A DNA stretch of 64,000 bases from Heteronotia binoei (lineage: Eukaryota), in contig NC_083239.1 of the NCBI RefSeq assembly GCF_032191835.1, positions 32,984,001-33,048,000 of the forward strand. Direction: 5' to 3'. Below, one piece after another: positions 11,201 through 14,200 of the stretch. Every line of letters starts with the position of its first letter. The first letter of the stretch is position 1. The translations under genes and the position numbers were made by a program. Under the pieces are notes generated by a model that was not told where the DNA came from, made no database searches, and was given only the letters and a program-made list of their open reading frames with translations.

Positions 11201-14200
11201 CCCAAGGGCTACCTCCCTTCACCCCCTTGAGGCAGGAAAGCAACTGAAACAGAAAAACAGATATACACAGAGAGAAGAAGCCAGTTAGACCAGTCCAATC
11301 AGCGTGCCCCAGTGCTTGGGTTGTTCTCAGGATGGCCAGCACTGTCTTCTTCTGCTCCCAGGGAAGTGAGTTGAGAATGATGACAATGTTGTGCTGCTCT
11401 AAGAACTGCCATACTAACTTCCCCACGCTTTCATTCCATCACCCTGGTTAGGCTGATCACATGTTTATCTGTTGGCTCACTGCATGTTGCACAGATTTGG
11501 GGAGGATGGAACAGGACAGACTTTTCTGGGGTTGTCTCTGAACTTTTCAGCACTACGCATTCCTCTAGCATGAGTTTCCAGAGAGCCTTCCTCTGCTTTT
11601 GACATTTTGTTACCACAAAAATGACCTTGCAGCCTGGTAAGCCAGTCTTCTGGCTCTCTTGCTTTCCAGAGAGGCTGACTCTGTGCTTCTAGGAAAGACA
11701 GAAATGCCTGGATGATCCAGTCATGGCTCCACATTACCGAAGGCCCAGAGAATGGCTCAGAGACAGTAAGAAAGTGGTTCTGAGTGTTGGTGCCCCTACA
11801 CTGCAGGATTGCTTTTCTTATTGGTCATTACCTTCCCTCTTAACAAATGGCACCTCTTCAAAAACTATAGGGTCACTTTGGAAGCTCCTGGCTTCTCACT
11901 GCCCCATTGCAAACATATTTCTTGAAGGCTGCGAACCAGCTGCTTCTTGACTTTTATCACATCCAGATGGACATTCTCTGTGTAGTTGCAGGACTAGATA
12001 TTGTGATAACTTCTTGTATTTAATACTCAAGAGAAGAGAATCAAAAGGGCTGTACAGCATTGTCTTGTGGGAACAATGGTGGAACGAGTCTTTGCCGCTT
12101 TCCCCTTTGAAATGTATACAGAGCGGGGATGGAGAGGGGAGGGATAGGCAGCATATGAAATCAACTCTACAGGAGGGTCTTGCACAGATAAGGTGTGACT
12201 GCCAGCCGAGTTTCAGGGGAAAGATGATCTGACCAAGGCATTGCACAACCATTCATGAGCAGGGCCTGACTTCTTGCTCAGGTGCTGATGGAAACTCTTT
12301 CTTTATTCCAGCAGCAGATGTAGAGGAGACAGCTGGGGGATTCTCCTCAGAACATGTCAAGAATGAAAATGCTGAAGGAGATGAAGATGGACCACAGAGG
12401 CAGGAGGAAAGCCCCTCAGGTAAGAGGAGGGATAAGCCCATTAAGGAAATCCCCTCTCCAAGAAGAAAGGTCATTTTAAAGGCCTGCATATGACCAAGAG
12501 AATGGAAATGAAAATGCCGCCTTTGCAAAGACATTCAGTCAGACAATGAATGTCATTTCTCAGACCCCGGTTCCCTTAGGAGAGAAACAGAATAAGTGGT
12601 TGGAGTGTGGAAACAGCTTCAGTCAGAAAACAGTCCTTACTGTATGTGGTGGAACAGTCTTCCTCATACCTACAGGTCCTGTTCCACCCTCCCGTCTAAG
12701 TTTCCCCCAATATCTGGAAGGACTTTCTAGGAATTGCTGAGAGGGTAAGGACTCCCAGCTTCCATTCCAGGTTTTGAGGCCTTGCCACTGTTTCTCCCTC
12801 TACCCAGATCCTGGTTACCATGGGGACAGCTTCCTGCCTTGTGCATCCCTGGGGCTCCTTTTAAAACAGCATATCCAAGATAATGGAGGTCTGTGTGGTA
12901 CAGAGAAACACTACCAGGATCAAAAGTTATAAAGTATTAACAAAAAAAATGTTTATAAGCATACTCTTAGCACAGCACCAGACTTAGAATGGGATTCAAA
13001 AGAAATGGGTAAAACACAGTTCCTCTGTCCCTCCCTCTATACATGCCTTCTCAGTTGTTAAATATAAGGCAGGCTCTTTAGCTTAGAAACTGACGGATTA
13101 CCTCAGGAGTTCCGTTAACTGCAGACCTCTTCCCCAAGTGTAGGCCACCACATGGCAATGGCTGCCTCTTCCAGACCTTAGTCAAGAGCTCTCTCCCCCT
13201 TGATGGAATGAGCACAAAACAGCCCCTCCTCCTTTTCCCAAGAGTCTTAACATCTGTCTTTCCACTCCCACTGATTAGGTGAGGCTGGGCCAAAGAAGCT
13301 TTTCCTGAAGTGTCCAAAAGTTTGTTCTTGAAGCCTTTCTAGTCTCATTCTCTCTTGCCTGCTCTCTGCAGTGAGAGAAAAACTTTTAAACTCAGAATGA
13401 TGGCTTTGCTCGCTTCATACCTTCATCCAAAACTTCATTTCCTCCCACTTCACATCTGAGAAGTCACACAGATGGATAGCCATATAAATAATAAGCATCC
13501 CAAACAAGCATCTCTGATGCAGGAGGTTTAATGTACTTTGAAAGTGTATTTTATTGTACGCTTCAATGTACAGCAGGAAGAAGACATTGAAATCTTTGGA
13601 GTCTGGCTGGAATTTCAGATGCAGATTAGACCTCCTTGCGTGGGTTCTCACAAGATCTCTTTGTTCCAACAGGGGATGATCAGAGGAATGAGGAGGATGA
13701 GGAACTGCATTATCTGTTGCCTGATGAAATGAAGAATGAAGACGTGAGAGGAAACTTCAGGAAGAAAGGAAGACCTAAGAGGCAGAAAGGCAGCCACACA
13801 GTCAAGAGGAGGGGTAAACCTATGCCTTGCCAAGGAGGGGATTTGCAAGAAGCCATTCACATGGTGGAGGAAACAGACAAGGGCTTGGAGTGTGGAATAA
13901 ACATCTCATGTGAAACACAATATAATGTCCATTTACCAACGCATCAATGCCTGGAGTATGGAAAGACCATGATTCACAGAGCAGAGCTTCATAGACATCA
14001 AAGAACACATGCAGGAGAGAAACCTTGTAGGTGCTCAGACTGTAGCAAGAGCTTCACAGAGAAATCAGACCTTGTTCAGCATCAAAGGATTCACTCAGGA
14101 GAAAAGCTATTTATCTGCTCAAGGACTGGAATGGCATTCTCTGATGGAAGAAAGCATAATGTACACTTCCCAAAGCACAGCATAATGAAGGCACATAAAT

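Follow-up and report, generated by a model that had tools for sequence, protein, structure and literature searches.

Tandem exon duplication is reportedly a source of new and alternative exons, and the surveys by Kondrashov and Koonin in 2001 and by Letunic et al. in 2002 are said to have described it as such. The linker exon of the gecko zinc-finger genes analysed here resembles a product of this process, in that a new exon stands beside its parent, is homologous to it, shares its phase, has a symmetrical frame and appears to have inherited its acceptor. The duplicated unit is different, however, since it combined an intron tail with the beginning of the last coding exon and was not an exon with both of its splice sites. 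The gecko copy would thus have come without a donor and had to gain one, which seems to have happened twice. The exonisation of Alu sequences through a newly gained 5′ splice site is said to have been set out by Sorek, Lev-Maor and Ast. Here too, one or two point changes would make a donor, either creating an exon or moving its boundary, although in the geckos the substrate is host coding sequence and the second donor appears to have shortened an existing coding exon. Degenerate fingers and spacers in KRAB zinc-finger genes were reportedly noted by Looman et al. in 2002. The gecko linker between the KRAB domain and the fingers is likewise built from zinc-finger (ZF) exon material with decayed fingers. 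Whereas mammalian relics of this kind are contained in the one ZF exon, the gecko relic is a separate cassette exon and its decayed fingers are now intronic. In a literature search, no paper turned up that deals with the linker exon, with SCAN-KRAB genes of geckos, or with splice donors in TGEKP linkers.

The whole stretch of DNA analysed, 64,000 nucleotides in length and here called the window, contains four tandem gecko SCAN-KRAB-C2H2 zinc-finger genes, based on Pfam searches made exon by exon. All of the features described are on the + strand. In gene 1, matches were obtained for SCAN (7855-8313, E 8.7e-37), KRAB (9581-9706, E 1.7e-21) and zf-C2H2 (13675-15300, E 6e-75), and the assignment of this gene to the SCAN-KRAB-C2H2 class combines these three matches with RNA joints that connect KRAB to linker and linker to ZF exon only. 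Between the KRAB and ZF exons there are symmetrical phase 1-1 cassettes of 108-126 nt, one per gene and two in gene 4: L1 in gene 1 (12312-12419, 108 nt), L2 in gene 2 (28530-28655, 126 nt), L3 in gene 3 (45120-45245, 126 nt), and L4a (61901-62026, 126 nt) and L4b (62655-62780, 126 nt) in gene 4, the last being a tandem copy of the cassette with a period of 754 nt. The cassette product is an acidic peptide of ~41 residues (L1 has 35 whole codons and a net charge of ~ -9), for which no Pfam family was found at E<=0.01; a KRAB-B box exon is accordingly rejected, there being no KRAB model match beyond the A box.

The linker exon of gene 1 is spliced into mRNA. RNA was read against gene 1 only, using four runs from two studies, and in all four the depth is confined to the bin 12258-12454, with 0 in the neighbouring bins. 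The first-pass annotation had predicted a junction 9707>12312 between the linker exon and the KRAB-A exon upstream (9581-9707, ending in phase 1), and this joint, with GT..AG ends, is present in runs X1, X2 and X4 (9706/7>12311/2). In run X5, the normalised depth of the linker exon is at least that of the adjoining exons. A second predicted junction, 12419>13673, was recovered in its essentials, with one contig and 11 reads joining the exon end (from 12413 plus six letters) to the acceptor of the ZF exon. These reads, however, have ACGCAG in place of the CCTCAG of the window at 12414-12419, a 2-nt variant, and their far side is placed at 13670, not 13673, both acceptors being in frame. The 3′ junction reads derive from another allele or a near-identical copy.

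Homology of the linker exon to the 5′ part of the ZF exon, proposed from inspection of the letters, was borne out by alignment. The ZF exon of gene 1 (13673-15303) carries the zf-C2H2 match, and its first ~47 codons are paralogous to the linker exon. When its 5′ part (13600-13950) was used as a blastn query, 28583-28698 matched at 74% over 116 nt (E 5e-16), and further matches were found at 45169-45288 (E 2e-8), 62709-62823 (E 3e-6) and 12390-12441 (E 4e-4). In MAFFT alignments the homology begins ~55 nt upstream of the acceptor and continues into a finger, the intron tail and acceptor of L1 (12252-12311) corresponding to those of the ZF exon (13616-13672); the homology therefore includes the splice acceptor, as is expected of an exon born by tandem duplication. 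More than ~60 nt upstream of the acceptors the intron-tail homology is ambiguous, and the left breakpoint of the duplication is therefore only approximate. A transposon-derived exon (MITE or SINE) was considered and rejected: the linker exon does not belong to a dispersed repeat, as within the window it matches none but its own five copies and the ZF exons of the four genes, and the MITEs are confined to the relics.

The consensus donor noticed in the first-pass annotation, at the place where the ZF exon has ACA GTC AAG, is confirmed as AG|GTAAGA in the five copies (CAG|GTAAGA, with GAG|GTAAGA in unit 3). At this position the ZF exons read ACAGTCAAG or variants, and by this comparison the donor appears to be new relative to the ZF exon. 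The donor-site codon is GTC in the ZF exon, AAG in Sphaerodactylus and, judging from the Asp in the protein, GAT in Paroedura. The charge has also been switched: the ZF-exon paralogue is basic, and all linker copies are acidic. Unit 1 is indeed shorter through deletion (108 vs 126 nt), but two separate 9-nt deletions are responsible rather than the single 18-nt deletion that had been suggested.

Everything between the linker and ZF acceptors derives from the ZF exon, together with ~55 nt of intron tail. In gene 1, the proximal relic that is now intron (12420-12640; RNA depth ~0) holds, in order, the donor GTAAGA, the decayed rest of the pre-finger region, relics of fingers 1 and 2, and the first half of finger 3. 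It was believed that the segment ended in a half finger; the finger is whole, split by an insertion of ~0.8 kb (12641-13446), with its second half (..TSHLRSHT) at 13447-13474. This insertion is common to window units 1, 3 and 4 and to some Heteronotia copies. Examined as a possible transposon, it showed no terminal repeats, and within the window the sequence of its start is confined to linker copies. The end of finger 3 also contains a dead old donor, aligned with CACACAG|GTGAGG of Sphaerodactylus. Decayed remains of finger 4, of a linker and of finger 5 up to its middle follow at 13475-13615, where the duplicated segment has its distal end; they align to the intact fingers of ZF exon 1 and also to Eublepharis and Heteronotia.

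The old donor relic lies ~200 nt upstream of the window ZF exons. In unit 1 it is dead (CACACAG|AT, 13471|13472), in units 2 and 3 the GT is kept (gene 2, 30116-30140, still CACACAG|GTG), and in unit 4 the site is deleted. The old donor also persists inside the intron of a Heteronotia copy (L002:11301). Glycine codons are GGG or GGA in 33 out of 33 canonical finger linkers of the window (GGT, 0 out of 33), therefore one synonymous G>T would create a finger-linker donor.

In other geckos, the segment is a long internal exon. The Sphaerodactylus exon (L001:4867-5283) is an open reading frame over its 417 nt, encodes an intact C2H2 finger (26.4-bit zf-C2H2 match) and has a phase 1 donor, CACACAG|GTGAGG, that is read in the DNA at a finger linker. 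Eublepharis DNA likewise has one long coding internal exon, with the two acceptors 583 nt apart, and in both species the donor follows HTG or HSG in the finger linker. In Paroedura isoforms X5-X12, known as protein models only, the whole segment is a long coding internal exon. These states outside the window genome are based on NCBI gene models, intact ORFs and canonical splice sites. The short form is present in Gekko japonicus proteins. In the Euleptes model P0033 the exon ends seven codons later, a hint that Euleptes may have shortened its exon independently. Among 1.84 billion representatives there are 26 matches at E<=0.001; all 21 for which the species was looked up are from geckos, the remainder being four others and one that is nameless. 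Paralogy blurs the dating of the new donor at species level.

It is probable that the linker exon is a partial tandem duplicate of the ZF exon, and that this duplicate was a long internal exon first and was then cut short by a new donor. Initially, ~0.6 kb across the intron-exon boundary would have been duplicated in tandem, starting with ~55 nt of the intron's tail and running through the acceptor, the pre-finger region and fingers 1-4 to halfway into finger 5. The homology and the 583-nt period in Eublepharis argue firmly for this duplication, and the alignments place its right breakpoint inside the finger array, marking it as partial. The upstream copy would then have become an internal exon of ~380-420 nt, spliced through the acceptor that it had inherited and a donor in the linker that follows finger 3 (..CAC ACA G|GT GAG..). 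Sphaerodactylus and Eublepharis DNA and the Paroedura protein models have this long-exon state; the order of events is inferred. In a gekkonid lineage (window genome, Heteronotia and Gekko), a stronger donor, CAG|GTAAGA, probably arose ~290 nt upstream, which would have cut the exon to 126 nt and made its downstream part an intron, decaying independently in each copy, with the old donor thereafter lost or left stranded. Since the segment is one coding internal exon in other geckos, the GGTAAG donor would have shortened a living exon. The present role would be that of an acidic spacer, its copy number, 0-3 per gene, varying among paralogues.

A wider alignment contained 18 copies, 17 of which are gekkonid (five from the window and 12 from Heteronotia). 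The five window copies had been described as stop-free and a multiple of 3 upstream of the donor; this extends to 17 out of 17 gekkonid linker exons, at 108, 114, 120 or 126 nt, with the qualification that eight of the 12 Heteronotia copies were found via proteins containing them, so that their intactness is partly built in. The nine unbiased copies (four Heteronotia and five window) are all intact too. Symmetrical phase 1-1 holds in all 17 and in the 417-nt Sphaerodactylus exon, and the first read-through stop in the 18-copy alignment is always past the donor, at codon 43-171. Downstream of the donor, each window copy has stops or frameshifts, and the relic of L4a has in addition a MITE of 210 nt (62088-62297, 10-bp target duplication), in agreement with the first-pass annotation. 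The stop-freeness of the five window exons is a weak argument, because the first 24 relic codons of these five copies have one clean point stop only, and more weight is therefore given to the phase of the indels and to the set of 17 copies.

The proposal that constraint stops at the donor is correct for the frame, as in-exon indels are in frame in seven of seven cases (17 copies) vs none of 11 in the downstream relic (five window copies). It is also correct for the splice signals; the acceptor flank (12252-12311) is the best conserved part among the five copies, with 7.9% pairwise difference vs 23-29% in neutral flanks. It does not extend to dN/dS, which was suggested as a check and shows no difference across the donor: the pooled NG86 value is 0.56 for the exon vs 0.50 for the first 24 relic codons (five copies, low power), not clearly below the neutral control as would be expected from purifying selection on the linker protein sequence. 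The dN/dS values therefore cannot support the constraint argument. Selection is seen to preserve the acceptor flank and the donor, the frame and the lack of stops, and is not seen on amino-acid replacements in general.

A dN/dS equal to that of the neutral relic is what would be seen if the exon were carried in the mRNA with a peptide that has no function, selection only keeping it harmless through its frame, lack of stops and splice sites. This explanation has to be taken seriously, its chances being somewhat short of even. It is consistent with the existence of Heteronotia paralogues that have no linker exon (P0005 and P0002), with length variation through in-frame deletions, and with the lack of a Pfam family match. 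It fits less well with the reversal from basic to acidic charge in all copies, or with a cassette that has been repeatedly re-duplicated and retained. The first third of the exon, with a motif of 13 residues, is also conserved across gecko families; synonymous sites are kept there too, and a splicing enhancer is possible. It is possible that this conserved third has a sequence-specific role.

The first-pass annotation had instead explained the linker exon as the rescue of a dead terminal exon: the whole ZF exon was duplicated and died, and its open 5′ stub became an internal exon once the GGTAAG donor arose. In its favour, none of the five window copies has a living relic past the donor, and compared with the ZF exon the donor is a derived state. 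However, the duplicate stops within finger 5 and there adjoins the intron tail of the ZF exon, no complete exon having been copied. Three other gecko genera have the segment as a continuous coding exon, two of them with an intact finger, and its own donor was read in the DNA in Sphaerodactylus and Eublepharis only; an ORF with a finger cannot be regained once decayed. In addition, the relic lesions are not common to all copies (Heteronotia 5c has no frameshift and a single point stop), therefore the decay came after the donor, not before. The spacing of the Eublepharis acceptors and the long internal exon of Sphaerodactylus, Eublepharis and Paroedura speak for an exon that was never complete or terminal, and was not dead, making such a rescue very unlikely. 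Even less credible is a short ancestral exon, with the long exons of these three genera secondary through loss of GGTAAG and read-through, for which there is nothing specific, the donor-site codon differing per lineage and not fixing the ancestral state, whereas read-through of an intron would not yield an open frame of 417 nt that is colinear with the ZF exon, includes an intact C2H2 finger and has its phase-1 donor exactly at the finger linker, and short-form copies still hold the old donor relic.

Beyond the preferred history of partial duplication followed by shortening, the cassette could be a gecko-specific, re-duplicating functional module, with a conserved acidic motif that tunes how strongly it represses or how KRAB or SCAN partners bind, and the finger-linker DNA could be a standing reservoir of donors. 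This is a speculative and rather unlikely extension. If true, linker donors that are one synonymous step away, and are usually purged, would let partial ZF-exon duplications seed internal exons.

As a case of exon birth, the linker exon is well resolved rather than revolutionary, and leaves the understanding of the gene family unchanged. It is rare to catch a new internal coding exon while its intermediates are still alive, and one gecko gene family appears to keep each stage alive: the parent exon, the long exon, the 126-nt exon, and the stranded old donor with decaying fingers in the intron. It offers a testable path by which a partial tandem duplication over an intron-exon boundary could lead to a stable cassette exon, and may be one route by which the linkers of fast-evolving KRAB/SCAN zinc-finger repressors lengthen and change charge.

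The window contains four genes arranged head-to-tail, each composed of a SCAN exon, a KRAB exon, a small linker exon, and a large zinc-finger (ZF) exon. In gene 1, Pfam identifies SCAN at 7855-8313 (E 8.7e-37), KRAB at 9581-9706 (E 1.7e-21), and C2H2 fingers at 13675-15300 (E 6e-75); further KRAB exons lie near 25137, 42875, and 59444. The KRAB exon of gene 1 ends at 9707 (CTG G/gtaagg, the slash marking the splice site) and ZF exon 1 starts at 13673, after the acceptor ..ccaacag/. The linker exon of this gene, L1 (12312-12419), is preceded by ..ttattccag/ and ends at CAG/GTAAGA; it has phase 1-1 and therefore fits between the KRAB and ZF exons. 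The open reading frame of ZF exon 1 stops mid-finger at 15290-15303 (..CSECG then stop), and this may be a truncated array, or gene 1 may be decaying at its 3′ end. At 10480-10620, two overlapping short open reading frames resemble an extra Heteronotia exon between the KRAB and linker exons (..ERAEGLVSEERLESF..). They are frameshifted, have no RNA depth, and are bypassed by the KRAB-to-linker joint; this is a decayed exon in gene 1.

RNA data from four runs of two studies (X1, X2, X4, and X5) were analysed over 9500-15400, covering gene 1 alone. All four runs have depth in the bin containing L1 (12258-12454). Depth is 0 in all bins from 10288 to 12257, with 0.81 in X2 alone at 10091-10287, and is also 0 from 12455 to 13636 except for single-run traces of 0.11 (X5), 0.57 (X2), and 3.73 (X1). 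The first-pass annotation predicted two junctions. That at 9707>12312, with GT..AG ends, is documented by X1 and X2 contigs and by a single X4 read, as the joint 9706>12311 (cut +1). For the other, 12419>13673, joining of the exon to the ZF exon was found in one X2 contig, three X4 reads, and eight X5 reads, but with an exit at 12413, the six letters ACGCAG in place of the CCTCAG of the window, and a landing at 13670. The far side is either 13673, with the tool extending over the shared CAG, or 13670, a CAG/CAG acceptor as in unit 3; the frame is kept either way. No insertions inside L1 were reported in the RNA molecules, which are therefore the 108-nt form peculiar to unit 1. Several other differences from the window, such as 9677 T>C and 13716 G>A, are present in all or most covering reads, although these are few, and the molecules are interpreted as belonging to a different allele or to a copy of very recent origin. 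Inclusion of L1 looks to be the main form, because X5 depth, corrected for the exon fraction of each bin, is about 11 for the linker exon, against 6 for KRAB and 8 for the ZF exon start. No KRAB-to-ZF skipping joint was present among the best 15 of 26 joints for gene 1. An intronic repeat at 9697-10090 has many variants, many loose ends, and enormous depth, which amounts to hundreds of reads and reaches 3e5 in word depth; this is an abundantly transcribed dispersed element (SINE-like), outside the mRNA of the gene.

Self-comparison of the window identified the exon and its downstream sequence in five copies, at 12200-12700 (copy 1), 28410-28913 (copy 2), 45078-45568 (copy 3), 61811-62577 (copy 4a, interrupted), and 62624-63104 (copy 4b). 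The proposed homology to the 5′ part of the ZF exon is supported by blastn (best match 74 % over 116 nt, E 5e-16) and by multiple alignment, in which similarity runs from about 55 nt 5′ of the acceptor into finger-coding sequence, the polypyrimidine tract and AG being included in the duplicated stretch. Relative to its ZF homologue, the linker acceptor is shifted 3 nt upstream, within a CAG/CAG/CAG run. As first described, all five exons are stop-free and a multiple of 3 (108 nt in unit 1, 126 nt in the other four); the shorter length in unit 1 is due to two separate 9-nt deletions, rather than a single 18-nt deletion. Four donors are CAG/GTAAGA and one is GAG/GTAAGA, and in these columns the ZF exons have ACAGTCAAG, ATGGTCAAG, ATGATCAAG, and ATAGTTAAG. 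Gene 4 has two intact linker cassettes in tandem (61901-62780; period 754 nt). The left edge of this repeat is about 33 nt 5′ of the acceptor. Two or three cassettes are also found in Heteronotia genes, so the cassette re-duplicates. The element that interrupts copy 4a is a MITE of 210 nt at 62088-62297; its terminal repeat is of CAGGGGTGGCCAAACTGCGGCTC type, and its target duplication is 10 bp long (TCCCAGTCCA). The same MITE family is present in one Heteronotia copy (locus L005, near 5400), in the relic, the decayed ZF-exon-derived sequence 3′ of the linker donor.

The five window copies differ least in the 33 nt ahead of the acceptor (mean pairwise difference 7.9 %); the figure rises to 17.5 % in the exon, 22.9 % in the relic, and 28.8 % beyond it. 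Indels are a multiple of 3 in 2 out of 2 cases in the exon vs 0 out of 11 in the relic. Six loci fetched from other geckos added 13 copies. Across 17 gekkonid copies (12 Heteronotia binoei, five window), exon lengths are 126 nt (12 copies), 120, 114 (two copies), or 108 nt, none contains a stop, the first read-through stop is always 3′ of the donor, and all seven in-exon indel events are a multiple of 3. Eight Heteronotia copies were ascertained via proteins containing them and are biased; the nine unbiased copies behave likewise. As had been suggested, splice signals, frame, and openness are constrained up to the donor and no further. No constraint on amino-acid replacements is apparent: the anticipated dN/dS contrast is absent, the pooled value for the window copies being 0.56 for the exon and 0.50 for the first 24 codons of the relic (old frame). 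In the first third of the exon synonymous sites are conserved too, which would fit a peptide motif and equally a splicing enhancer.

Three linker states can be distinguished among annotated gecko proteins. In the short state, the linker ends ..S(H/Y)(T/A) and is followed by GDDQRNEE of the ZF exon; this is found in many Heteronotia genes, often two in tandem, and in the Gekko japonicus proteins P0025 and P0041. The exon is absent from Heteronotia P0005 and P0002. In the long state it continues uninterrupted past the donor position, as in Sphaerodactylus townsendi (P0011), Eublepharis macularius (P0015 and P0028), and, from protein models alone, Paroedura picta (P0004 and all its listed isoforms). 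Long exons are known from gene models plus open reading frame and splice-site logic. At the DNA level, the Sphaerodactylus exon (L001:4867-5283) is 417 nt, phase 1-1, and shares the acceptor context; it has no phase-1 donor at the gekkonid site (..CATGTAAAGAAG..). The C2H2 finger it encodes is intact (26.4 bits in Pfam), and its end, ..CACACAG/GTGAGG, is inside an HTG-E linker. The Eublepharis exon is in the same state, ending ..CACTCTG/GTGAGG. The long coding exon is most probably the older state, because neither a reading frame that runs colinear to the ZF exon nor an intact finger can be regained after decay. In the Euleptes P0030 and Paroedura P0043 models, a linker-type N-terminus is directly joined to ZF-exon-type sequence, as if the interval had been lost by unequal crossing-over between the two paralogous segments. 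The Euleptes P0033 protein model ends the exon seven codons later and may be an independent shortening.

The older end of the exon can be traced in short-state genes. The short exon of Heteronotia P0006 (L002:10899-11018; donor GCAG/GTAAGA) is followed by a frameshifted relic ending ..CACACAG/GTGGGT at 11301, about 200 nt 5′ of the ZF exon. What had been described as a half finger at the relic end is instead a finger that an insertion of about 0.8 kb has broken in two; the other half and the old donor are about 200 nt upstream of every window ZF exon. The old donor is dead in unit 1 (13450-13474, CACACAG/AT), reads CACACAG/GT in units 2 and 3, and has been lost by deletion from unit 4. Sequence 3′ of this site can be aligned, up to about 55 nt short of the ZF acceptor, with finger 4, a linker, and half of finger 5, and in Eublepharis 583 nt separate the two acceptors, with nothing else intervening. 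These relics and this spacing argue against a copy of the whole terminal exon; the founding event was most probably a tandem duplication that spanned the intron-exon boundary and covered about 0.6 kb. The suggestion that a dead terminal exon was rescued is likewise not supported, as only part of the exon was duplicated and Sphaerodactylus and Eublepharis DNA has a long coding internal exon.

Both donors could have arisen by single changes. Glycine in the 33 canonical HTGEKP linkers in 14512-49202 is encoded by GGG (30) or GGA (3) and never by GGT (0 out of 33), the codon that would make a consensus splice donor inside the ZF exon; its lack may be due to avoidance of cryptic splicing, or simply to homogenised repeats. 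For the old donor, one synonymous G>T would turn ..ACA GGG GAG AAG.. into CAG/GTGAGAAG. The start of the old donor agrees with this as far as GTGAG in Sphaerodactylus and Eublepharis and as far as GTG in Heteronotia. At the new donor, every short form has the codon GGT; the corresponding codon is GTC in the ZF exon and AAG in Sphaerodactylus, and in Paroedura, where the protein has Asp, it is probably GAT. A single A>G in a Paroedura-like GAT AAG would create CAG/GTAAG. Relic lesions are not common to all copies, and Heteronotia copy 5c has no frameshift, which suggests that decay came after the new donor.

Protein searches used single exons as queries. A HMMER scan of 1.84 billion representative proteins with 70 residues read through L2, the unit 2 exon, gave only 26 hits at E<=0.001. 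Of 20 looked up, 19 are from geckos and one (P0045, from Logan) is nameless; P0011 and P0001 were known geckos, and four others were left out. All named relatives are geckos, of the genera Sphaerodactylus, Euleptes, Eublepharis, Heteronotia, Gekko, and Paroedura. A literature search found no prior description. As far as sequence search can see, the linker exon and its parent segment look restricted to Gekkota. The linker product matched no Pfam family in the single-exon search, and its 13-residue conserved motif is a hypothetical candidate for a sequence-specific role. By hand count, the product is acidic, with a net charge of about -10 for L2 and -9 for L1, and the homologous ZF-exon stretch is basic in its second half. 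Genes carry zero to three cassettes. The linker product is interpreted as an acidic spacer separating KRAB from the fingers.
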